Part shown: positions 19,862-37,500 of the stretch, piece after piece
How the letters are laid out: the number at the start of each line of letters is the position of its first letter
Position numbering within the stretch: position 1 is the first letter of the stretch
NCBI GenBank assembly: GCA_026936335.1
Contig: JAPMXV010000049.1
Coordinates: 62,001 to 126,000, forward strand
DNA: 64,000 bases
Direction: 5' to 3'
From: Mantamonas sphyraenae STR306
Lineage: Eukaryota > Protista > CRuMs
The notes under the pieces: generated by a model
What the model was told of the DNA's origin: nothing
Databases searched by the model: none
What the model saw: only the letters and a program-made list of their open reading frames with translations
Made by a program: the position numbers and the translations under genes

Positions 19862-20855
19862 ATGGCCTCCGAGGTGTCGTTGCCGCAGCAGGAGCCGCTA
19901 GAGGCTCCCTCTGTCGCCGAGACATCTTTCTTGCGCCTACTGGACAGGTGTCAGAAGAGCATGGCCAATGCACACAGTGTCAGTGACGATACATTGGTTC
20001 TACAGCAGCTTGTACGTTTTCTACGGGAGCCGTCGTCGGTTCCAACCGCCCACATTCCGTGCCCTTTTCCTGCGCGTATGAGAGTGTCTGACACTGCCTT
20101 GCTCACTGACCTCCCTCCCCTCCCCCCACATCTTTGCGTATCGACAGTACCTCAATGTGTTGCGCCAACTGTACAGCGAGCTGCGAGAGGAGGAAAAGGC
20201 CTCCGAGGACAAACTTTCAGACTACCACAAACGCCTTGAAGTGCTCAACAAGGCAGCTCGCACGCCGCTCGCAGAGATGTCGCTCACGGCCATGCGCATC
20301 CAGAGCAACAAGAACTTGAGTGTTGAGGAAAAGAATCAACAGATGGAGATTCTGCAGGTCAACAAAGAACGCTCGAGTCGGGAATTGCGTTCGCGGCTTT
20401 TCGCAGGCGCCACCCAGCGCGGCACACGTGTACATACAGACCGACCCATTGACGAGTCGCTCGGCGACGTTCATAACGCCAGCATGGTTTCCTTTGCCTC
20501 CACCAGCAGCGATCTGACCGACGACGAGGGAGCCACAGCCGGCAAGGATTTGCTCGCCCAGTACGCAGACATGGAAGAGCGCGTGACCAGTGACATGCTG
20601 GAACTTGTGCGCAACCTCAAGCAGGTCACTCTCAATGCCAATGACGTCCTCCAGCGCGACATTGCCACGGCCAGTGAAGCGGAAACAAAGCTGGACCGCA
20701 ACCTTGCCAACGCCACACGCGAAAGCCAGCGTGCAAAGCAATTCAACCAAGAGGTGTCCACTGGAACTTGTGCCATGTACGCGCTTTTCGTTCTCTGCCT
20801 CATTGTCTTTGTGGCAACCTACGCCGTGATCAAGATTTTTCCAAAGGCTGTCTGA
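19862..20855 (+). CDS. USE1: USE1-like Qc-SNARE (ER retrograde transport)
   Basis: The N-terminus has ETSFLRLLDRC. The intron is at 20012-20147. The SNARE helix is EERVTSDMLELVRNLK..LQRD..LDRNL, and the C-terminal TM ends in IKIFPK. Confidence 0.8.
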
Positions 20856-20925
20856 TCGGGGCGTGGAGACCACCATGCAAATGGACATGCTTTTTCATTC
20901 CTACGGAGGTCTCGCTTCACGGTGT

Positions 20926-23900
20926 TCACTCTGCATGCCACATGGCTTGCAGCGACTCAAGGACGGCGGCCGAAACCGCCTCGACGTCCTCCACCGTTGC
21001 CAAGGAGTCGGACTGTGCAACACCATGCACGATCAATCCGGTCACCTTGACGCCCAACACGTCGTTCACACGCTTGGCCTGCTCCTGAAGCACGTTCTTG
21101 GCTTCTTCAAGGCTTTCCACGCGCTGGTAGTATCGCACAAACAACTGTCCGCTGGCAGTTTTCATCGGTTGCTGTTCCTTGTCCATAGGATGCAACCAAA
21201 GCGCATTGCCATCGTACACGCTCACATACAGGGGCGATGTGTCCAAGTAGAATGCACGCACCGCCTCTGCCTCTTCGGGCTTGTTCACGCTCAGTCGATC
21301 CGACGACTGTGCAATGAGGGGACACGTAATCTCGTAGCCAAACGTTTGTGCTCCCTGGCGCACCAACGCGTCCACCAAAAAGTACTCCGGAGTCTTTGGC
21401 GTGGTACCGGGCAGCCAGCCCAATGCCTCGTGTGATTGCCACTCGGCGTATCGCGGATGCTCCACAAACCGTGCGTACTCTTCCTCCAGCATTTGCAAGC
21501 CCTTCAGAGTGTCAAACAGGTAGATGCCGCAGTTGCGCCAACCCCAGCCCGTAGCCGCCTCCAGCGCTTCCGGAACTCCAGCCTTGCGGTCTGCCTTTTG
21601 CCAGTTGCCGACCACGCGCCCGCTGTCGCAACTCCCCACGCCCACACGCAGGATGGGCGAGTACAAGTGCTCCGCGGGCACGTTCAACGACGGCAGCGCA
21701 GCCGCAATGGTGTCGTCCAGCGCAAATCCCAGCTCCAGCAGCCTGCGGATCGTTGCCGGATGCTTCACCGGGTTGTCACTCCACAGCACGGTGCTCAGAG
21801 ATCCTGCGAGCTCTCCTTCGCCCAGTTCCTCTCGGAGCGCCTGCAGCGCCACCAATACTGCGTCGCCGTCGCCCAGTCTGTCTCGTTGAACCGGAAACAA
21901 CAGCCGGTAGCCGTTCTCGGCGCAAAACTCGCTGTCCGCAACCACCTGCTGCAGCCGTTCTCGGTTGTTCTCGGAGCAAACCACCACAATGGTGCCCTCG
22001 CCTCCGTGGCTGCGTGTGATTGGCGCCACGTTGCGAAGACTCAGCAGAAACATCGAATCCCCCAAATCCACCATGTCCTTGCTTTCCAGGGCACCCACCT
22101 CGTCCTGCATGCGTCCACCCCATCCAGCGGCAGGGCAAATGGCAATCACGGGCCGCTCAGTCTGCACAGACGAGCCCAGACTGGCCAGCTGGGCCAGCTC
22201 CTCTTCCGAGTGGCCTTGGTCGCCCACGTTGCGGATTGTGTCCAGCATGCGCATGCGAGTGCGTCGTGTCAGCAGACCTTGGTGGCCACCGTCGTTCACA
22301 TACGTGGCCACCTCTGCGCAAAGGCGCATGCAGAATGTGCACATCTTGCCCAGGAAACGACTGTGTGGTTCCGTGTTCCACAGCGACGTCCACTCCAGCA
22401 ACAGCTCCAACGCCGTCTCCAGGTCTTGTTGCGTGTACTGTGCGTCCACCCACTCGCCATGCTTGTCCAGTTGGCCCTTGCGGTGAAGCGACATGGTTTC
22501 GCGCGAAAGCTCATCCTGGTGCGCGTGTGCAGGCAGACGTGCGTTGTGCAGGTGGTGCACCACGGTCTTGCGGATGTTGCTTTCAATGGCGGTTGTCGGG
22601 TTGTAGCCCACGGTATCGCGAGCCAAGTCGATCTGCGCGTGCGTCAGAGGCACATCACCCTTGGGCGGATCCACAGACACCATCAGTCCCTGGGCAAGGA
22701 GCGACTGGACACACTCGTCGACTGCCTCACTGCTCATCTGTTTTACCGCACCGCTCGTCTTCACCTTGCCCAGCTCGGCGGCAATCATCACAATCACCTC
22801 GCGCACGCTCGTGGTGTCCTCCTCACCCAGGTTGAACACCTGCAGCCATTCCCTGCCCTCTTGCCCGGCCTCGTAGCTCCCTTCCATACAACATCGGATC
22901 CCTTGCACAATATCCTCCACAAATGTGAAATCGCGCTGGTAGTTGCCGTCGCCATACATGGTCAGCGGCTCAGCCCCGTTGCTTTCCAGCATGCGCACAA
23001 AGCTGCCAATGGCCATGTCTGGCCGTCCGATACCTCCAGCGAGCATGGGTCCATCCACAGTGAAAAAGCGCAGTCCCGTCATTCGCATGCCGTGCTCCGC
23101 TGCAAACTGTCGCGCCTGTTCCTCGTTCTTCACTTTTGTGCCGGCGTACACACTCTCGGGCTCACTCAGCTCCATGCTCTCCGAGAACGGTCCCTGTCCC
23201 TTTTTGCCATACACAGACGATGAAGAGGCGTACACGACGTCCTTCACGCCAAACGCTGCCGCCGTGGCAAACACGTTTTGCGTGCCGTTTACGTTCACGC
23301 TGCGGTACAAATCCGGCTGCGCCATCGAAGGGCGCACGCCAGCTCGCGCAGCCAAATGCACCACAAAGTTGACCCGATAGCGGCGAAAGACAGCCTCCAG
23401 GGCGCTGGGGTCGCGCAGATCTCCAATCTCCATTTCAAAGCCCGGCTCGCTGTACAGCCGCTGAAGGTTGCGTGTCTTGATCCCATTGTCGTAGTAATCG
23501 TTGATGCTGTCAAACCCGACCACACGGTGGCCCTCCTTCAGCAACAGCAGAGCCAGGTTGCTGCCGATGAATCCTGCTGCCCCGGTGACCAGGACACACC
23601 AGTCACGTTCAGGTGAGCCTTGCTCTTGTTTTGCGCTGGACCAGTTTCGTGATTGTGTGACAGGAGCCAATCGCGCCGCTGCAATCTGCGTGCGCACGCG
23701 CAGGAGAAGACCGGCGATGTTCTCGCCCTGCGCCAGCGCGCCCGCATCTCCCTGTGCCACGTCCACCACCATCAAATCGTGCAAACGGCGCTCGTGTGCG
23801 CACAAAGTCATCAAAGCAGGGTGGATGAATCCTGTGCCGCTGACCGGGACCACGCGAAAGGCGTCCATCTCCTCTGTCAAGGATTGCACCTTGTTGTCGG

Positions 23901-25930
23901 GCACCAGGGCGACCACCACACCACCCATACCTGCACCTGTCAATGAAGCACCGACTGCACCGCCTGCACAGAAAGTCTGTTGCAACTCGTCCAGCTTGTC
24001 GCGGCTCGCTCGGAAGGCGCCTGGCTGCTTCGCAAGATCTCCATCCTGGTTGGCAGCAATGAGCTCGTCCAAAAGGTCGTCCGAAACGATTTGCGGTGAC
24101 GTGCTGCTATCTCCCGCATGTCCTGCAGACATGTGCGCTCCTGCGTTGGCCACTGCCTGAGCAGCGGCGCTCATATCTCCGGCGAGACGGCTCTCTTCGG
24201 CTTGGCGCATGCAGATATAAAACTGCTCTGCCCGCTCGCACTCTGCAATGCCAAACAGCAATGGTCCACGCAGGTCCAGTGTGACTGTTTCTGGGTCGAC
24301 GCCCGTGTCGCCAAGGGGCTCCAAGAAGCGAGCCTTTGCGTGGGCGACCGTATCTGCCAGCTCAGGGCACTGCTCCAGCAACTCCGCCACGTTTGTGCTT
24401 TGTGGCAGGTGCTTCAACAGGCTGAAGATTGCGGCCACACCGCCCACCTTGGCGAAGCGCGTGGGAGAGATTGCACTGAGGCAGTCGAGCTCAGCCACAA
24501 AGTCGGCGTCGTAGCCCAGCTTGTGTTGGGCAGTCCACTGGAGCAAGCCAATGCCCACTGTGTATGCAAAGCGTGGCAGGGCGTATGCCAGCGCATTGTC
24601 GCCCGAGAGATCGCGTTGAAGGTTGGAGTTGGCCACCAGCAGCTGGTAGCCAGGAGGGAAGGCCACGTAGCTGGGTGCAATGCCTTCCAGATCACCCTCG
24701 TAGAAGCGACCGTGTGTGATGTGGCCTGCACGTGCATACACCATGGCTGCCTGGTCGCCGAGACCTGTGGTTGCGCCTGCCTTGGCTTCCACGGCTTTGG
24801 CCATGGGCACCAAGTCGCGCTGTGCCAGCTTCAGATCGTTGCACACGAGGAAAGCCTGGAGACAGCCGAGGACGAGGGCATGGGAGGATGAGAGGCCCGA
24901 GCTGAATGGAATGTCGCTGGAGACCACTGCACGAGTGCCCTGCCACATGGTGTGCTCTGCAAAGTGCTCTTTGAGTACAGCAGCGGCACCGAGGACATAG
25001 CTGGCCCAGGACCCACGCCACTCTGTAAGTTTGGCGGCGGTGTCGTCTGCGCCGAGGTTGAGATCAAATTCGACGGGCTGAAAGTGCTCCGAGTCTGTGT
25101 TTGTCATGCGCACAATGCCAGCGTCAGCTCCCTGGGCGGGACTGAGGCTAAGCACAAGGAGAGTCTCGCGGTCGATGGCCACAGGGTTGACGGCACCGCC
25201 GTGGCTGTCGATGTGCATTCCACGCAAGTTGATGCGCGCGGGGCAGCGCAGGAGAGCCACGTGGTCGTCGGCTGCATACTGATCGGCATACGATTGGAGT
25301 GCTTGGAGCATGTGGGCGATGCGTTGTTCAACGACAAGCAGGTCGTGGCCGTATGTGGTGGCCAGAGCATCCAGGACGGCCGGAGAGCGGCCCATGAGCA
25401 GGCGCTGCCACTCGAGGACCGACAAGCCGACGTTTTGGTTGTAGATGGCAGTGTGGGACTGAAGAAGGGAGGTGGGCGACGGGTCTCGGCCGTGGAGGGT
25501 TGCCAGATTGGAACCCGTCGCCATGTAGTGGCAAAGAAGGGCAAGCCAAGGCTGGAGCAGATCCAGACCACATCCAGGCTCGGCTTCGCTGAGCAGAGGC
25601 CACAGAGAAGAGGCCGGAAGGGGAAGTTGGGCACGGCTGGCGAGCAGCGTGGCGAGGACGAGGAGTCCCAGGGCGAGCAGACGATGCTTGTCCTCGCCCT
25701 CAGCTGAGTCGCCAAAGAGGGCTTCGAAGCTCGGTGGCAGTACGACAGTGTGCTCAGCTTGCGACACGTCGGCATAGGCCAGCACGGCAGCCTGGCATGC
25801 AGCGTCGTGTCGGAGAACGCTGGTGGGAGGAAGAACGAGCAGGGTGAGCTCTGCGGGTCAACGACGGCCACCAGAGCGATGTGACGGGCGTGGGGAGGTG
25901 TGCAACGAGCAAGAGATCAAGTGAGAATTG

Positions 25931-25982
<52 letters not shown>

Positions 25983-26392
25983 GGATGTGAGCCGGCTGAG
26001 TGCGCGTGTGCAAAGGGAAACGGCATGACCAGGGAGGCCGGAAGCATCTGCAAATTACCCTCTGCCACGGCGTCACGAGCACGCTGAGAAACATTGGAGG
26101 CGTCGACACCGTCGCCAAGAAGCGCCTGCCACACACGGGATTGGGCGAGAGAGTCGACATGGACGTCAATCCACTCGAGGGCAAAGGAAAGGCCGTGTTC
26201 GACGAGGGCGTGCTGGGTTGGCGAGGCGTCAGCCAGGGGACATTGCACAGCGACAGCGACAGTCTTTTCCGAGGAAGGATCAAAGCCACTGTGGGCAATG
26301 CCGCCCGGGACAACATCGAGAGTGAAAGAAAGGACGCGATCGGCCAGCTGCACGTTGCTTGCGGCAGAAGTTGCGACAACAATCGATGCCAT
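20926..26392 (-). CDS. Trifunctional sugar-nucleotide enzyme: GHMP (galacturono/galacto)kinase + UDP-glucuronate 4-epimerase-like SDR + GlmU-type nucleotidyltransferase (~1752 aa)
   Basis: Exon 26392-26059, intron 26058-25851 (GTAATT..TTGAC..CAG), then exon 25850-20926 as one uninterrupted frame. Kinase motifs: PARINLRGMHIDSHGG, IPFSSGLSSS, GLGDQ, GASLTGAGMGG. Epimerase motifs: TGAAGFIG, HLAARAGVRPS, YASSSSVYG, YAGTK, RFFTVDGP..GRPDMA, RDFTFVEDI. Nucleotidyltransferase motifs: PAAGWGGRM..SK, QRDRLGDGDAV, WSDNP, NCGIYLF, EYFLVD, SVNKPEE. Confidence 0.88.
25934..25978. repeat. (GT)~22 microsatellite inside the intron of the fusion enzyme gene
   Basis: Directly visible dinucleotide repeat. Confidence 0.95.
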
Positions 26393-26485
26393 GGTTGATG
26401 TGGACCAGATGAGGCACGGGCACCCACACGCACCAAGAACACAACCTATGAGGATGTGAGATGGAGTGTTGGGGGTGTTGGGTGC

Positions 26486-29400
26486 ATGCTGGCGCTGGCG
26501 AGGCCAAAGAGCATGGAGGAGCTGCAGGCGTTGCGGCAGGAACGCAGCGAGGCGTTGGCGGAGCAACGAAGGGCCGGAGTCACTCGGTCACGTCTACAAA
26601 TGCAACTGCTCGGCGTTAAAATGGCGTGCAAAGGAACACGGCAGACGTTGGAGGACGTGCTTGCTCTGCACAGCTTCAGCGGACGTCGTGGCTCGGTGCA
26701 CCAAACGGATGTGCTTCGTGTGCTACACAAGCTGCGTGTGTTGAGGCGACGGATCAAGTCGCACCTTCAGGCGGGGCGACGTGCACGCAGTGAATCGCAG
26801 ATGGGTCTGTTGGTGCGTAGTGGTCACGGCCATGGGGGCCAGGCCAACGGGAGTGAGCAACAACGGTCGCAAAGTGGCAAACTGCCGACTGTGTATGACC
26901 TGCAGGAGGACGCGACGTCCATGCTGATCACACAGGTGGATATGATTATTAGTGAGATTTTGGCGAGTGGAGGAGGCGTCGGGGAGCTGGAGGAGGACGG
27001 CGGCGTGGAGGAAAACGCAGAGGATGCTGGCGAGGAAGGCGATGCGCAGCCATCGCTGGCCGACCGCATGAGCCAGGTGACGCCAAAGCAGCTTCTGGGA
27101 TTCCTTGTGCGAGCACACACACTGGAGATTGCCTTTCGCACCTCGTTGCAGGGCGAATCACGTTCCTTGCTGCTGAGTGCGGTGAGGGGAGCCAGCCAAG
27201 ACAAGGGAGATGGTGAAGGCGATGGCAATGAGACAGCCTCGGCTGCACCCAAGAAACCCTCTGTGATGGACCTTGCAGATGTGCTGCTCATGTCCGACGA
27301 AGGATTTGCAGATCGGTTGCTGCGTATTGAAGAGGACCGACGGTTTGCGTTGGAAGGGCCAAGCCGATCGGCACTTCTGCTACAGCGGCAGCGCGCAGCC
27401 ATGGAGGATGGAGGAAGCAGTGAGGACGTGGGGATGTGGGGTGGTCGCCGATCCCCGTCTGCAATGGGAGAGCGTGTGGACGAGGAGGAGTTGATCGGGC
27501 GGCAAGGGTGGCGAGCAGTGCTGGAAGCACGGGTCAAGCGTGTGAAGAACATGCACCTGATGTGCAAAGCCGAGAACGATCTTTTCCAAGAGCAACTGAG
27601 AGAGATGAAAAGTCAGTACGAGCGGGAGAGGATGCTGAACATGGCGCAGGACGAGCGGCGCAAAGAGTTGCTGGAAAGCGTGCGTCGTGTGAGCGGAGGC
27701 ACGTTTGCTCTGGAATTGCGAGAGTTGAAAAAGGCACAGGCGGAGAGCGAACCCTACTTGGAACGCATGTTGGACGCGATGAGCATACATGGAAAGGATC
27801 TGGTAGAGGTGCGGCTGCAGATTGGAGAGCAGCAGCGGGCAAACGAGTTTCTAGGCCATCGGGTAGCCATGCTGGAAGGCAAGCTGGCCATGGTGGAGAG
27901 GCAGCGACTGCGTGTGGAAACCGAGTGCAAGAAGTTTGCAAGAGACCTCGGAGCATCTGGAGGTGGATGTGAACGGGGCGGAGATCGGGGCGAACCGACA
28001 AGAGCGGGAAGAACGGGAGGCTGATCGGTATTTGGTGCAGCTGCTGGACGACATCCGAAGGTATGGCCAGGAGAACCTTGCGTTGCGGCAGGAAATCACG
28101 CAGGTGCGGTATGTGCAGCTGGACGATGTCCAGGAGATGATGGACGAACGATGGAGCTCGGGCAAGGAAATGAGAGCCCGGTTCAACGAGACGTTTGCTC
28201 GGCATCAAGAGCGCAAGCATGAGCTGGCTCAAGAAGTGAAGCTGTTGCAGCGGCGGGTGGAGTCGATGCGGACCAAGGTGGATGAGGGAGTTCGGGCAAA
28301 CCGCTTTCTTCAGCGAGCGATCGAGCAAATCCACACAGAGCTGAACGCAGCAGCAGCAGCGCGGCGGAGACGTGCCAGTGGAATGCGCTTGCACGGCAGA
28401 GAGCGTGCGGAAGCGGAGCGGAAGGAGCGTCTGGCCGCGAGCTCAGAAGACAAGAAACGGGCTGCACGGCGAGCGGCCATCGAGGCGATGGATAGGTCCG
28501 AGATTCGGGCGGCCAACGAGCAAGCAAGGCAGGAGATCCGGAAACAGATTAGCAAGGGGTCGCGCACGATGAAGGCGATGACAGAAGAGAGGCTGCAGCG
28601 GTACACACACCTGCGCGAGCGACGCGAAAAAGAGGACATGTTGATCCAAAAGGCACTTGCGCGCAGTGACGAGCGTGGGGCTGCGAGTTCTATGGAGATT
28701 CTGGAGCAGGAACAACGCGAGGCGCTTGCCAGGGGAATGGACCTTGACACGCTGCTAGGAGCGACGGGCATTGAGGATGTTTTGTACGGGGAAGGCGTGA
28801 GCGAGGAGGAGGTGCTTCAACGTGCACGTGGCACGCTGCGTCGCTCCCAGAAGGAGCTGGACCGGATGACAATCCGCATCTACCGGCGAGAAGAGGTGGA
28901 GACGGCCTTGCGGGTGGCGAAAGTGGTGCAACGCAAGCGAGGGCGGCAATCGATGAAACTGCAGCTGGCAGTGCATGCATTTGAGGATCAGAAGCAGGCA
29001 GAAAAGGACAAGGGCAAACGGCGGCAGGGAGCGTCGCGGCTGAGCGAGCTGAGCGCTCCGAAGCAGCGTGCAGAGCGAGTGGAGGACAGACGCAAGCGTG
29101 AACGCAAAGCAAAAGCGGCTGACGAGGTCAAACGCAAGCGCAGGGCACGGCATGTGCGTGACAAGCTGGATCGGCTGCGGGACAGGAGTGGCAGCAGCCG
29201 CAGCAGCGAGGTGTCTGCCCTCACAGCAAGCGAAATGGAAGACGGGAACGAAGAGGAAGACGGAGACGAGAGTGTCGTGTATGCGCATGACCGGGAGGAG
29301 GAAGGAGTGGGAAAGGAGGAAGCGGAGGACGTGTTGGCGAGCGCAGAGAACGATGACATGCAGGTTGAAAGCGAGGACGACGACGACGATGAAGACGACG

Positions 29401-31519: not shown

Positions 31520-34500
31520 ATGATCCCTCGAGGGCAGCTACGGCGCACAGTGCGTAGCAGCGCACTATGGGCGGTGCTAGCTCTGCTGACATGGGTCGGG
31601 GTGGCCTGCGTCGACGCCGTGCAGACGTCGTCGCTGGGCACCTCACCAGCCCACAGCACCCTTGTGGATGCCCCGGCCACAGCCGTTGCGGGATTTCGCT
31701 CCACATTTTACATTCAGGCACGCACAAACACATCCGCCGTTCAGACACGAGCGCCTGACTCCTTTGCTGTCGCTTTGCGTGCTGCCTCGGGAGCCGACCA
31801 CTTTCAAGCTGTTGTTACGCAACACTCCACCGCAGGCCTGTACACAGTCTCCTTCCTGCCTCTGGCCCGAGGCACATACAATGTGTCTGTCACTCTTTCA
31901 GGTGGGTTGTGTACCTCGTTCCGTGTGCGCGCTAATGGTTCCTTTTGGTGAGCCCTGGTCTGCAGCCGAGAACCTTGCCCGTTGGGCATGTGCCCCGACA
32001 CGTTCGGGCCGGCACCTCCAGCTGCAATGTCCACCTGCTCCGCATGCACATCCCCAGGCTGTCTCTACATGTGTACAAAGTGCATGCCCTGCGCACGTGT
32101 CCCCTTCTTCCGTCTACACGTTTCCTTCGCACGCTTGCACTCGCTGCCCGAAACGGATGCAACGGCCTCCCGCCACCGCCACCGGACTCCGGTCGCCAAA
32201 AAGGCGCCTGCCTGCGTCCTGCCCCCGCTGCTCACACCCAAAGCCTCTGTCCACATCTGTAAACCCCACCCACAGGTCCCACCACCAACACGCGTGCTCT
32301 GCAGTTTGATGGCACCGCACAGCAGGTGACTTGCGTTGGATTGACGGCCATCACTCCCGTTCATCCGACGGCCTCCGTCTGGTTCAAAACCACAAGCTCA
32401 TCCAATCAAATGCTCTACCGCTACGACGACGGCAGCCAGGGCTTTGGGGTCCAGATGCTCAACGGCCAATTGTTCTGCCACATGTGGACGCCGACTCTTG
32501 TTTCCATTCTCTCGCCGTCCACGTATAGCGATGGCCAGTGGCACCACATTGCCTGCTCCTTCGACGGCTCCTTCTTCACACAGTACATTGACGGCGCACA
32601 GACACGCCAAACCACAACCACATCCTCTGTCTCGTACAGTCTGCCCTCACTCACCATCGGCAACAATCCGGGCTCCTCAATCTACTTCAATGGCCAGCTG
32701 GACGAGATGCAGCTGTGGTCCGTTGCATTGGCACACGAAACGGTCCAGTTTTACATGACTTCTCTCCTTCAGGGCACAGAGGCCAACCTTGTGCTCGCCC
32801 TGGACTTTCACCTCCAACCTAGCCGACCTCTCGCCAACCAACGCCCAGTGCACTGCCGTCAACACCCCCACCTATTCCCAGCGAAACAGTGATTTCCGCT
32901 TTTCCACCCCTGAACACATCGCTGCCTCTCCGTTTTCCCTCTCGGTAGGCGGCCTACCCGTTCGGTTTTCGGGACCCCAGCGCCTTGCCGCCGAGCCACT
33001 CCAGAACGCAACCTGGACGCTGCAGGACGTCAACTTTGACGGCAGCAACCGCACACAGGGTGGAAGGCACTTCAGCGTCACCCTCTACGGCCAGGCACAG
33101 AATATCAGCGCAAACGTCAGCGACAACGAGGACGGCACATACACAGTGGCCTACATGGGCCAGCAACGAGACATCCTGCAGACGTGGGTGCAATACGATC
33201 GCACTCACACAAACGCTTACTCGCTTGCTTTCAACGGCGTCTCGTCCTACGTGGATTTGGGCATCCCCGGCTCTCTTGACGTTCAGCGCTTCACTCTGCA
33301 GGCCTACGTGCGCAGCAATGGCACGACAGGGAACGGACAGAGCATTCTGCGTTGGATGAACAACGGCTATTCGCTGCAACTGACGGCCACGGGCCACGTG
33401 CAATGTGCCATTTACGACGACATCGGAAGTGCCACCACCGTCACGAGCTCTCGTGGGGCCTACAACAACGACACGTGGTACCACTTGTCCTGTACATACG
33501 ACGGCAACACTTTGGCTTTGTATAGCGATGGCCAGCTGGATGCATCGGTCAGCAAGACAATGACCATCTCCTTTGTCACCAACGTGGGCATGCGCTTTGG
33601 CATGCAGGCAGACGGCACTCTGCCCTTTTCAGGCCTCATCGATGAAGTTCGCGTGTGGAATCGGGCTCTTTCTGCCTCCGAAGTATCCACTACCGCGACA
33701 GCGGTCCTAGAAGGCACCGAGAGCGGGCTCGTCGGCGCGTGGTCCTTTGACGAAGGCACGGGCTCCCTGCTCCACGACTTGACCTCAAACGCATACCACG
33801 GCACAGGGACATTTGTGTCACATGACACACGCACGAGGTCTCTCTCGTTCCTCTCGCCCGTACACGTGGCCGGCTCACCGTTTCAGACGGTCCTCGAGTA
33901 CCCTCCGTACGCGCCAAATTCGTATGCCAACGGCACGGGACTCTTCAATACCACAGCAGGCGCACTCACCACAGTGCTCATTACCACAGTGGACATCTAC
34001 GGCAGCACCAGGAGCACCAGGGGGGGTGCGTTCAACATCACCGTGACGCCGACACAGTCCTTCGCAAGCCTGGCAGTAGAAGATCTTCAGGACGGCACGC
34101 ACAGCGTACAGTATAACCTTACGGTAGCTGGCAGCTATAGCCTGCACATGCAGCTTGTTGGCGCCGCAAATGCCTTTGCGAGCCTTGCCACTTCGCCCAC
34201 GATGCTCGTCGTGCTTCCTGCCACCGCGGCAAACTCTCTTTCTGCGCTTACGTGGCCCTCAGCCACTACCACTCCCTGGACTGCCACTGCAGGCGAAGGC
34301 GTCCTCTTTGGCCTGCAGCTGCGCGACATCTACGGCAACCTGGCCACGATCGCCTCGGATGCGGCTCTGCAGGCATCATCCGTCTCCCTGGCCTCTGCAA
34401 GTGTCCATTTGACGCCCACATGGACGACAAACAACGGGTCGCTATGGTTTGGCACTGTCAACGCGACCGTCGCTGGCGTGTACACCGTGCAAGCCCTGCT

Positions 34501-37500
34501 GAACGGCGCACCCGTACAGAGCAGTGTACATCTCGACGTGTCACCTGCTGTTGTGCACGTGCCTCAGACACTCCTCCCGGGAGTGAGTGGCGCTTTGATC
34601 TCCCCTGTCGCCGGATCTGGATTCTCCTTTGCGCCTCAGTTTCGCGACGTGTTTGGCAACAACGTCTCTGCAGCCGGTGTGGTTGCGGATTTGTCTGCTG
34701 CCCTCACTCCTGCCGATTCGGGCCTCACCCTCGCCGTTACACAAGCCACCAAGTTGGTGAGTGCAAACTTGACGCAGAGCGGCACGTACGCACTCTCGCT
34801 TGCCCTCGGTGGCGTGGCGTTGCCTCAATCTCCCGTTTCTGTGGTCGTTGCTGCGGCTGCCACGGCGACACCCTTTACACAGGTGCTCAACCCGCCCTTT
34901 AGCGTAGTGGCAGGTCAGCAGCTGACGTACACGCTGCTCGTCCGGGATGGTTTTGCCAACAACCGCACGGACGGCACTGCAAGCATCCAGCTTGAGCTCG
35001 ACGGCACCCCAGGATCCATTCTTGTCTCGTCTGTGTATGCGCATCCCGCCGTATACGTGCTTGGAGCCAACGTGACAGTTGCCAAACAGCACACGGTGCA
35101 GGTACGTGCGGACGGCGTGGTGTCAGCCGATTCGCCGATCGCGCTCACTGTCGTCCCTGCAGCCCTGCACGTGGCGAGCACCCACGTGTCGGGCCAGGGA
35201 CTGACAGAGGCATCTGCAGGACAAGGAGCTGCAGTCGCACTGCAGCTACGCGACGTGTTTAGCAACAACCGCACGGACCCAGCGCCAGGCGCAGGGGTGC
35301 AGGCATCTGTGCATGGGGCACAGAACCTCACAACCTCAGTGACCTACCTGGGTAGCGGTCTCTACGCTATCGCGTACAATCAGACACTGGCTGGAACATA
35401 TTCCCTCTCGCTGACTGTCGATGGCACAGCCGTTCCCGGCAGCCCGTTTTCTGTGCAGGGCCTTCCCGGTGTCGACGTGTCGCCCGTCTCGCGGGTGTTT
35501 GACTTGCCTGCTGGCGATGTGGTTGCAGGCTCGTTGTCGGGCTTCACCTTTTTTGGCGTCGACCCATTTGCCAACAATCTGACCTCGTTGACAAACTACA
35601 AGGTGCAAATGGCGTCCACAGATGCCACAGTGCAGCCCACCGCTACATCGACTGGCCAGAGCGGCACCTTTCGATTCTCTTTCAACGCCACGCGCGCAGG
35701 AACCTACACGGCTTCTGTCGCCACTAGCGCGGGTGTGCACGTGTCCAACAGCCCCTTTGTTGTCACAATCGTGGCCGCAACTCCGTCGGCCACAGGGTGT
35801 GCCCTTCTGCTGCCGTCTTCAACCACAGACGCTGGCACCGCACCCACTGTGCTTATCCAAGCACGCGATGCCTTTGGCAACAACGTCACGCACTCAAGTT
35901 TGGCCAGTCGGTTTGCGGTCTCCCTGCAGCTGCAGGGGTCCTCAAGCTCGAGTGCGATGCAGGTCTCCCACATCGCCGCAGGCGTGTACAACGTCTCTGT
36001 GCCCTCCATCACGATGGCTGGTCTCCATACGCTCCACGCAACCCTGGACACCTTGTCACTGGCAAATTCACCTGCACAGTTGCGCGTCGTTGCGTCGTTG
36101 CAGCTCAATGCGGCTGCCACGCGGCTGCAGTCCATCGCTCCAGTGCCAGCCGTCGCAGGTCAGCTTGTCACACTTACGTTGCAGACCGTTGATGTGTACG
36201 GGAACAACAACACACAGGGGACCGTCTCCGACGCGCTCTCGTTCCGGGTATCGCAATCTGGCGTCACCTGGTTCTCGGTGGCGCGCTCCGACGGCACGCA
36301 CACGCTTGCCATTCGTTTGAACACAACTGGTGACATTGCGCTGACTATTGAGGACGCTACGTCCGGCGCACAGTTGCAGGATGTGCCCGTGGTCACCGTG
36401 CTCCCGGCTTCTGTTTCTGCGTCTCAAACCACAGCCACGCTGTTGTCGCTGTCGCTCAGTGCATCCGTAGCCGCACAGCCTACTCTGCGCATACAACCCG
36501 CGATCGCTTTGGCAACCCCATCACCACCGACCTGCTAGCACTCAATTTTGCAGGCAACAGCAGCTTGGCAGCGCACAGTCTTTCGTTTGCGCTGTGCGCC
36601 GACACGCCCACCACTGTCTGTCTGTCCGTCGCCAACGCCACCCTTGCAGGTTCCTGGCAGTTGCATGTGTCTGTCAATGGCTCTGTGTTGGCAAGCTCCC
36701 CGTTTTCGTTTGCGGTCGCAGCAGCAGCAGCCTCCAACAGCACCTCACGGGTGCTCTCGGTGACCACAGGGAGCGCCGACGAGCCAGTGCGCTTGCACTT
36801 GCTGTGGCAGGATGCCTTTGGCAACAACATTAGCAGCAGCAGCAGTGCCATGCAAGCGACTGTTTTCGTCGATGGCACACAGGCACCGGGATCTCTGGTT
36901 TCACGCACCGTTACAACGTCAGGCCTGCTTCTCATCGACGTTTCCCTGCGCCAGGCTCGCAGCTACTCGTTGGCTCTGGCCGTGTCCAACGGCACCCTCG
37001 CACTACCTGCAGGCACTTCTGTGTTTTCCATCACCCCAGGGGCCCTGAACCTGACCACCAGTCAAGTGTTGGGCGTGTGGCCTCAATCTGTCATTGCCGG
37101 CGAGGCTGCAGTAGCGCTCATCATGCAGACAGTGGATACCTGGGGCAACAATCGCACAGCAGCTGCACCTGCATCTGTGCAGCTGGTCGTGCCTGCTCCT
37201 GCACTGCGCACATATGACATGACGCACGTCAGCCAAGGCCAGTACGCTGTGTCGAACGCCAACGTGACAGCCGCTGGAGCATACACCCTTCAACTACGTC
37301 ATTTGGACCAGACAAACACGTACACAGGGGTCGAACTGACCGTCTTGCCCGCCTCGGCAGATGCTGCGTCGTCTCTGATTGTGCTTCCGTCCCAAATCCG
37401 CCTGGATCAACAAGCAGCCATTGCGGTGCACCCTCGCGACGCCTTTGGCAACGCCGTCAATTCTGCAGTGCTCTTGAATGTCACTGTGCGAATCCAACAC

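Follow-up and report, generated by a model that had tools for sequence, protein, structure and literature searches.

Gene structure and transcription

The 64,000-nucleotide window analysed here (contig JAPMXV010000049.1, positions 62,001 to 126,000) of the Mantamonas sphyraenae STR306 genome contains, on its minus strand, a two-exon gene confirmed to encode a single polypeptide of 1752 residues, in which a GHMP sugar-1-kinase, a 4-epimerase of the short-chain dehydrogenase/reductase (SDR) type and a GlmU-N-type nucleotidyltransferase follow one another in that order. Exon 1 (26059..26392, minus strand, 334 nt) provides 111 residues and one base, starting with the ATG at 26392-26390, and is separated by a spliceosomal GT..AG intron of 208 nt (25851..26058, minus strand) from exon 2 (20926..25850, minus strand, 4925 nt), which carries all three enzyme domains and ends with the stop codon at 20926-20928. 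The splice sites were read from the sequence (GT at 26058-26057, AG at 25852-25851) and the exons join in frame; in-frame translation gives 1753 codons with one stop at the very end. The minus-strand open reading frame (ORF) 20926..25785, used below for residue numbers, is open throughout its 1619 codons.

Public sequencing runs X1, X2 and X3 of the same study were compared with window positions 20700-26500. Runs X1 and X2 are DNA-like, and X3 is listed as 'DNA?' and not recorded as RNA; its contig of 5132 nt covers 21069-25850 and then 26059-26386, with exactly the 208 predicted nucleotides missing and CT..AC as junction ends on the plus strand. Because exactly the predicted GT..AG intron is skipped, this contig is taken as a transcript, and the gene appears to be transcribed. 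It is colinear with the window over 21069-25850, with both domain junctions unbroken and no further introns, and passes at its 5' end into Illumina adapter at 26386. Over 20700-25923 the X1 and X2 contigs follow the window colinearly and differ from it by substitutions alone; their coding part is free of indels, and the intron flanks are kept. A preliminary description made from the sequence alone had proposed, within 20926-26392, a 4.9-kb exon with three domains and no stop or frameshift; the open exon 2 and the colinear DNA runs agree with this, the X3 contig has neither an intron nor a break at either domain junction, and the 5' limit given there, 26392, is the A of the ATG that opens exon 1. 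Inside the intron, a (CA)n microsatellite of ~66 nt (~25924-25989) is the sole break point of both DNA-run contigs, and the DNA runs have one additional G after 26021.

Translation is placed at the ATG at 26392 with moderate confidence, the 5' end lying beyond contig coverage. Log-odds of codon usage, with the window's other long genes as training set, give +0.354 per codon for exon 1 in the ATG frame, compared with +0.326 for the kinase and negative values for the other two exon 1 frames; a different exon 1 frame, apparently favoured by GC content at third codon positions alone, was rejected because the log-odds reverse it. From the splice site to the kinase there is a single Met codon, at 25524-25522, which is ATG in the window and TTG (Leu) in all three runs, and therefore is not the start; the difference could be allelic or an assembly polishing error. 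There are seven more single-base differences between the window and the public runs. An opposite-strand ORF (26456..28024, plus strand) lies only ~60 nt from the start codon, which together with the contig end suggests a very short 5' untranslated region or a shared divergent promoter.

Exon 1 and the first part of exon 2 (25420..25850, minus strand) form an N-terminal extension of ~255 residues before the kinase. Its codon log-odds are positive in the main frame, and the alignment with bacterial kinases begins at ORF residue 123. Neither exon gave a Pfam match for the extension, the exon-2 part had no Atlas match, and a tblastn search of the N-terminal piece against the fetched bacterial loci found no match.

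The window has ~60% GC, and the fusion gene is single-copy in the assembly (25,061,354 bases, 78 contigs). Its neighbours in the window are eukaryotic and include filamin/LamG proteins, a protein kinase, a DEAD-box helicase and DNA polymerase phi, and the transcriptome of Mantamonas plastica (EukProt) contains a 116-residue fragment with 75% identity to the transferase domain. The xenic cultures (PMC10492846) and the bacterial look of the domains would be in line with an artefact, be it contamination by bacteria, a chimera in the assembly or a gene model that wrongly unites separate genes, yet this is extremely improbable: the spliceosomal intron is removed in the X3 contig, the window is colinear with two independent DNA runs, the gene agrees in GC and codon usage with its eukaryotic neighbours, and a homologue is transcribed in M. 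plastica. Contamination is excluded because of the spliced intron, the eukaryotic neighbours and this homologue, and the colinear DNA runs likewise rule out a chimera.

Kinase domain

The kinase, placed by Pfam and alignment at 23836..25419 (minus strand), belongs to a long galactokinase-like GHMP sugar-1-kinase subfamily with the motif PARINLRGMHIDSHGG. The Pfam families GalKase_gal_bdg (ORF 165-213, 35.8 bits, gathering threshold 23.1), GHMP_kinases_N (ORF 263-351, 46.0 bits, threshold 22.3) and GHMP_kinases_C (ORF 571-641, 26.7 bits, threshold 21) together span ~25293-23863 of the window, close to the ~25250-23830 first proposed for a GHMP kinase. The Arg of PARIN, the Asp of GLGDQ and the GLSSS loop align with the solved galactokinases 2cz9 and 1s4e, and TGAGMGG is also kept. 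In galactokinase structures, the catalytic residues are the PGRVN Arg, the Asp of G(I/L)xDQ as the base and the GLSSS loop that binds phosphate.

The galactokinase motif GEHxDY reads GMHIDSH in this kinase, with Glu changed to Met and Tyr to Ser. The score of 100.9 bits against the galK model TIGR00131 (cut-off 226.65) and the loss of the Glu place the domain outside canonical galK, and a canonical galactokinase with GEHVDY is encoded at another locus of the same genome. The pattern R(I/V)NLRGMH(I/V)D(S/T)HGG is common to a whole subfamily of kinases of 540-600 aa, whereas the operon-linked bacterial kinase clade described below has RINWEGHHVDHQGG instead. In galactokinases, the Glu of GEHxDY contacts the C6 hydroxyl of galactose, and its loss therefore fits a different group at C6. 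Plant galacturonokinase (GalAK), of which the searches returned no sequence, has Ala at the position of this Glu, which serves as a lead only. The nearest solved kinases are galactokinases and GalNAc kinase, and an Atlas search with the kinase domain returned generic galactokinase-like clusters only. Stand-alone GMHxDxHGG kinases are present in the amoebozoan Balamuthia mandrillaris (L022:8001-10374) and in the streptophyte alga Chlorokybus (P0023).

The kinase is joined to the epimerase by a junction of ~52 residues (23680..23835, minus strand) without stop or intron, and the alignment with the bacterial epimerase-transferase protein P0001 starts right after it, at ORF residue 703.

Epimerase domain

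The central domain (22540..23679, minus strand) was assigned through Pfam and solved relatives to the extended SDRs, among which the UDP-glucuronate 4-epimerase type is nearest and is its predicted activity. Pfam Epimerase matches ORF 731-975 (E 6e-51) and GDP_Man_Dehyd matches ORF 732-1074, at ~23595-22564 of the window, as expected from the ~23600-22560 given earlier, and the motifs quoted at that time (GxxGxxG as GAAGFIG, SSSS, YxxxK as YAGTK, HLAARAGVR and GRPDMA) are all in the translation. The nearest solved structures are 5u4q (E 1e-52), MoeE5 (5e-32) and the Bacillus cereus UDP-glucuronate (UDP-GlcA) 4-epimerase 6zl6 (2e-29); other SDRs rank lower, with the WbgU/WbpP type at E ~1e-24 and chains named UDP-glucose/galactose 4-epimerase at 1e-27 to 1e-21. 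The chain 5u4q was deposited as a dTDP-glucose dehydratase, yet it carries the RFFTVYGPWGRPDMA motif and may be read as a uronate epimerase. GAAGFIG (GxxGxxG), SSSS, YAGTK and the Arg of GRPDMA are kept and align to T126-S128, Y149/K153 and R185 of 6zl6; in the B. cereus enzyme, Arg185 alone holds the carboxylate of UDP-galacturonate (UDP-GalA) (PMC12338863).

The nearest database epimerases, where named, are UDP-glucuronate 4-epimerases (JGI). The nearest stand-alone relatives (P0139-P0150) have 474-510 aa, ~150 residues beyond ordinary UDP-glucuronate 4-epimerases, and this additional part may be the helical linker without a transferase. The genomic context of one 474-aa epimerase showed no linked partner genes.

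Linker, nucleotidyltransferase and C-terminal module

A linker of four helices (22156..22539, minus strand; model helices 7-26, 31-52, 56-73 and 82-95) follows the epimerase and is conserved in the bacterial epimerase-transferase proteins, as seen in the P0001 alignment and in A1, an alignment of the C-terminal 507 residues of the window protein with 15 relatives (16 sequences). The core of a GlmU-N-type sugar-1-phosphate nucleotidyltransferase comes next (21235..22155, minus strand), with PAAGWGGRM...K, Q..LGDGDA, LWSDNP and NCGIY. The relatives P0004 and P0007 match NTP_transferase at E 0.004-0.005, under the Pfam cut-off, and phmmer of the C-terminal 507 residues against the Protein Data Bank (PDB) gave nothing usable.

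The A1 profile searched against the PDB matched the uridyltransferase domain of Mycobacterium tuberculosis GlmU (E 3.5e-12), in alignment with which GxGxR, the Gln before GDGDA and the Asp of the DxP motif correspond; the family-invariant Lys124 is not placed on the GlmU Lys in this profile alignment. The A1 columns show no variation at G119, K124, Q188, G193, D194, G195 and A197 and hardly any at R113 and D225. An AlphaFold model from A1 (m1215d02bc054) has a pLDDT of 81.5 and a pTM of 0.84, and in a Foldseek search against solved structures GlmU, GalU, RmlA and ADP-glucose pyrophosphorylase make up nearly all of the best 50 matches, GlmU at E 1e-13. The third domain is considered real because the profile and the predicted fold both match GlmU uridyltransferase, and the resulting fold core (~22155-21235) corresponds to the ~22150-21270 of the preliminary description. 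The conserved Gln is the residue that recognises uracil in GlmU structures, and UTP would be a fitting nucleotide.

The chain ends with a small alpha/beta module and tail (20929..21234, minus strand; model strands 407-479, helices 447-465 and 494-506), partly conserved in A1 and with low model confidence in its last 30 residues. The left-handed beta-helix of GlmU is absent: the C-terminal 100 residues form this module, and Pfam gave no hexapeptide match.

Relatives and gene layouts in bacteria

The transferase family is very rare, with 7 clusters found in a full HMMER scan of 1.84 billion representative proteins, 10 loci in a pattern scan of 185,579 species genomes, and members in 5 of the 35 species genomes of the phylum of locus L008. 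A whole-protein homology search returned only three epimerase-transferase proteins, and the triple fusions described below came from the representative search and genome contigs. Over the epimerase-transferase half, the window protein shares 36-38% identity with the three database proteins and 39% at best in the tree alignment.

In loci L001-L004 and L009 (record titles Proteobacteria, Acidobacteria and Myxococcales), as well as in one JGI contig known from its gene table only, a kinase of 645-647 aa lies directly upstream, on the same strand, of an epimerase-transferase gene of 920-945 aa. These loci are bacterial operons of the kind for which the preliminary description had suggested a search, matching the fusion in their genes and gene order. 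In L008 and L011, from uncultured bacteria, the genes are fused in one frame of 1567 aa with kinase, epimerase and transferase in that order; the triple-fusion cluster P0006 has nine members (NCBI, JGI, ENA) under the database name 'GDP-mannose 4,6-dehydratase', and NCBI records of triple fusions are HQO34684.1, HPA46850.1 and HQP99338.1. A kinase-transferase fusion without the epimerase (P0004, 1033 aa, L013:1753-4854) is encoded on a prokaryotic contig, where a divergent ADP-glucose-pyrophosphorylase-like gene adjoins it. In the phylum of the fused forms, L007:7200-10679 and L006:7998-10763 have an epimerase-transferase gene without an adjacent kinase; in L007, the match is preceded by ~290 open codons that have no assignment and may not be translated. 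The gene layout varies within one bacterial phylum. No linked partner genes were seen around stand-alone kinases of bacteria, and the Balamuthia kinase likewise stands alone.

Because their genes are repeatedly linked, in the operon and in the fusions, the three activities are proposed to act in one pathway, and this repeated linkage is the strongest evidence for it. As to the surroundings, signs of a uronic-acid context are a GH28 gene near L004 and, next to L001, genes for a GntR regulator and an altronate-dehydratase-like protein. A Laminin_G_3 (concanavalin-like) protein is encoded just upstream of the kinase/epimerase-transferase pair in L004:5157-6038, L009:1973-2611 and the JGI contig of P0002, and Laminin_G_3/filamin proteins lie at 32789-36535 of the window, ~7 kb from the fusion gene; this recurrence is probably a coincidence.

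The bacterial relatives have in common with the window protein the three domains in the same order, the helical linker and the C-terminal module. They differ in lacking the 255-residue N-terminal extension, the intron and an additional 5-residue loop in the epimerase, and their kinase belongs to another clade, with the motif RINWEGHHVDHQGG. The preliminary description knew of no three-way fusion that includes the epimerase; bacterial proteins of 1567 aa with the same order do exist, and the literature search found no paper describing any of these layouts. The design is therefore already in the databases as uncharacterised bacterial proteins, and is new for eukaryotes.

Origin of the fusion

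In the epimerase-transferase tree, the window protein sits on a very long branch between two bacterial groups. For this half, the approximately unbiased (AU) test rejects nesting within the fused bacterial clade (p 7e-5), a placement that is thereby ruled out, and does not reject a position beside that clade taken together with L007 (p 0.12). The transferase tree pairs the window sequence with P0004, the kinase-transferase fusion (99/98), both branches being long. The epimerase-transferase half was probably transferred from the very rare bacterial family before the split of M. sphyraenae and M. plastica.

The best matches of the kinase are stand-alone proteins from Balamuthia mandrillaris (38% identity), Chlorokybus, an MMETSP transcript and three short contigs. 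The Balamuthia gene lies among eukaryotic genes and spans more sequence than its coding length requires, which makes introns probable. In the kinase tree, the window sequence groups with Balamuthia, Chlorokybus and related sequences (100/100); a topology uniting it with the operon-linked and fused kinases of bacteria is rejected by the AU test (p 0.0004). As the source of the kinase half, a kinase lineage already present in eukaryotes is more likely, with an unsampled donor as a further possibility.

Since the kinase falls in a eukaryotic clade and the epimerase-transferase half in a bacterial family, the mantamonad fusion is read as a mosaic, probably made independently of the bacterial fusions. 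The fused acquired operon that had been suggested at first is borne out in part: the operon exists and the epimerase-transferase half is bacterial, but the kinase groups with eukaryotic kinases. An origin of all three genes from one bacterium, with later fusion and a eukaryotic look of the kinase due to a long-branch artefact or an unsampled donor, would account for the existence of the same gene order in bacteria that also fused the genes, for a window sequence outside the sampled bacterial clades on a long branch in every domain tree, and for the grouping of the transferase with P0004; it is unlikely given the 100/100 grouping of the kinase and the two AU rejections, one for each half. All these statements on origin are soft because the mantamonad branches are very long.

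Proposed pathway and substrate

Here it is proposed that the galactokinase-like GHMP domain would use ATP to phosphorylate a free uronic acid of galacto configuration at C1, D-galacturonate (GalA) being the most likely one, that the C-terminal GlmU-type domain would convert the sugar-1-phosphate and UTP to UDP-GalA, and that the central SDR would interconvert UDP-GalA and UDP-GlcA. In this way, free uronic acid from digested prey or from the organism's own glycans could enter the UDP-GlcA/UDP-GalA pool, bypassing UDP-glucose dehydrogenase. It is quite likely, with catalytic residues kept in all three domains wherever these were checked in the alignments, that the protein is a real three-module nucleotide-sugar enzyme. 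The gene structure, the continuous spliced contig, the three folds and the presence of their catalytic residues are shown, whereas which sugar and nucleotide are used, which way the flux runs and whether there is channelling are inferred; the case for a uronic acid as substrate is about evenly balanced, GalA specifically is somewhat less probable than that, and the explanation as a whole, with its uronic-acid substrate, has in our judgement an even chance of being correct. The composite claim of a single-chain enzyme leading from GalA to UDP-GalA/UDP-GlcA, with a new kinase subfamily and a rare transferase, built at least twice independently (from an operon in bacteria and, in the mantamonads, from a kinase of the eukaryotic clade joined to a transferred epimerase-transferase gene of bacterial origin), is tentative.

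Several observations weigh against this explanation. Both the GMHxDxHGG kinase subfamily and the GlmU-like transferase family are uncharacterised in every member, and Pfam, run on just the C-terminal 507 residues, misses the transferase and returns only IspD (E 0.067). In the FFTVYGP-GRPDMA loop of the epimerase, right before the carboxylate-binding Arg, five residues are inserted and a Tyr is changed to Asp; both features are absent in the fetched bacterial relatives and in the aligned solved epimerases. The branch of the window protein reaches 3.1-3.3 changes per site in the epimerase-transferase trees, and the X3 contig stops short of both ends of the coding sequence, by 143 nt at the stop codon and by 6 nt at the ATG. 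The triple fusion in L008 adjoins polysaccharide-synthesis genes (a WecG/Bac_transf glycosyltransferase and another nucleotidyltransferase), not pectin genes. Because the genome contains UDP-glucose dehydrogenase-family loci and two UDPGP-family genes as well, the fusion would be an added route that is not needed for the supply of UDP-GlcA.

The same trifunctional design could act on another galacto-configured sugar, such as D-galactose, GalNAc, L-arabinose or an N-acetyl-hexosaminuronic acid, with the epimerase working on the matching UDP-sugar. This would suit the galactokinases and GalNAc kinase as nearest solved kinases, the uncharacterised state of the kinase subfamily, the location of many of its bacterial members in contexts without uronate genes, and the general polysaccharide-synthesis context of L008. 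It is considered rather unlikely, as the epimerase is nearest to UDP-GlcA 4-epimerases (E 1e-52 to 2e-29) and keeps the uronate-carboxylate-binding Arg, while the kinase has lost the galactose-binding Glu of GEHxDY and the genome already has a canonical galactokinase.

The altered loop of the epimerase, the divergence of the transferase and the very long branches also allow that one of these modules is non-catalytic and the protein bifunctional or regulatory; in a zebrafish fusion described below, the pyrophosphorylase half is inactive in standard in-vitro assays, and that of the Xenopus homologue is unconfirmed (PMC3938481). The retention of every residue checked in the three domains, a frame intact over 1752 codons with codon log-odds like those of neighbouring genes, the apparent transcription seen in the spliced X3 contig and the presence of at least part of the transferase domain in M. 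plastica make a dead module improbable, and an enzyme with three active modules is preferred.

Comparison with known systems and significance

The zebrafish protein DrGKUP is a glucuronokinase/putative UDP-glucuronic acid pyrophosphorylase that uses ATP for the kinase and UTP for the transferase (PMC3938481). Like the activity predicted for the window protein, it combines in one chain a GHMP sugar-1-kinase and a short bacterial-type nucleotidyltransferase that lead from a uronic acid to the UDP-uronate, but its order is reversed, with the transferase N-terminal and the kinase C-terminal, and it has no epimerase (PMC3938481). Its kinase belongs to the glucuronokinase clade, being specific for glucuronate (GlcA) and inactive on GalA (PMC3938481), whereas the window kinase is in the galactokinase-signature clade. 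The DrGKUP type occurs in some animals and fungi and not in CRuMs.

FKP of Bacteroides fragilis and Arabidopsis is a bifunctional L-fucokinase/GDP-L-fucose pyrophosphorylase salvage enzyme (PMC11982464, PMC6468028), in which, as predicted here, kinase and pyrophosphorylase share one salvage chain. The domain order of the window protein (kinase, epimerase, transferase) differs from the two domains, transferase before kinase, of FKP and DrGKUP. FKP forms a GDP-sugar, has its transferase at the N-terminus, lacks an epimerase and belongs to other kinase and transferase clades; it is used for one-pot synthesis of nucleotide sugars. By analogy, the window protein would work like FKP and DrGKUP, and it is a member of neither family.

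Plants salvage galacturonate with GalAK, UDP-sugar pyrophosphorylase and UDP-glucuronate 4-epimerase (GAE) (Yang et al. 2009, cited in PMC3938481; PMC4002622). The same three chemical steps are proposed here, but in plants they are divided among three separate proteins, with a pyrophosphorylase of the eukaryotic UDPGP type and not the GlmU type. With the UDP-GlcA 4-epimerases of B. cereus (6zl6/6zla) and MoeE5 (6kv9) and with GlmU (2qkx, 3spt, 1hm8) the window protein shares fold and catalytic residues; the solved epimerases are stand-alone, and GlmU is fused to an acetyltransferase beta-helix that the window protein lacks.

A kinase, a pyrophosphorylase and a 4-epimerase in one chain would be a new layout over the known two-domain enzymes and, if the proposal is true, a ready catalyst for UDP-GalA and UDP-GlcA from cheap uronic acids. 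Two families would also obtain their first function: the rare GlmU-like transferases, and the long galactokinase-like kinases, which occur in many bacteria as well as in a few protists and algae. The linkage of the same three activities as an operon, a bacterial fusion and a eukaryotic fusion is strong genomic evidence that they belong together, and in a deep-branching bacterivore such as M. sphyraenae, it suggests that sugars from prey or from its own surface may be recycled into glycan precursors.

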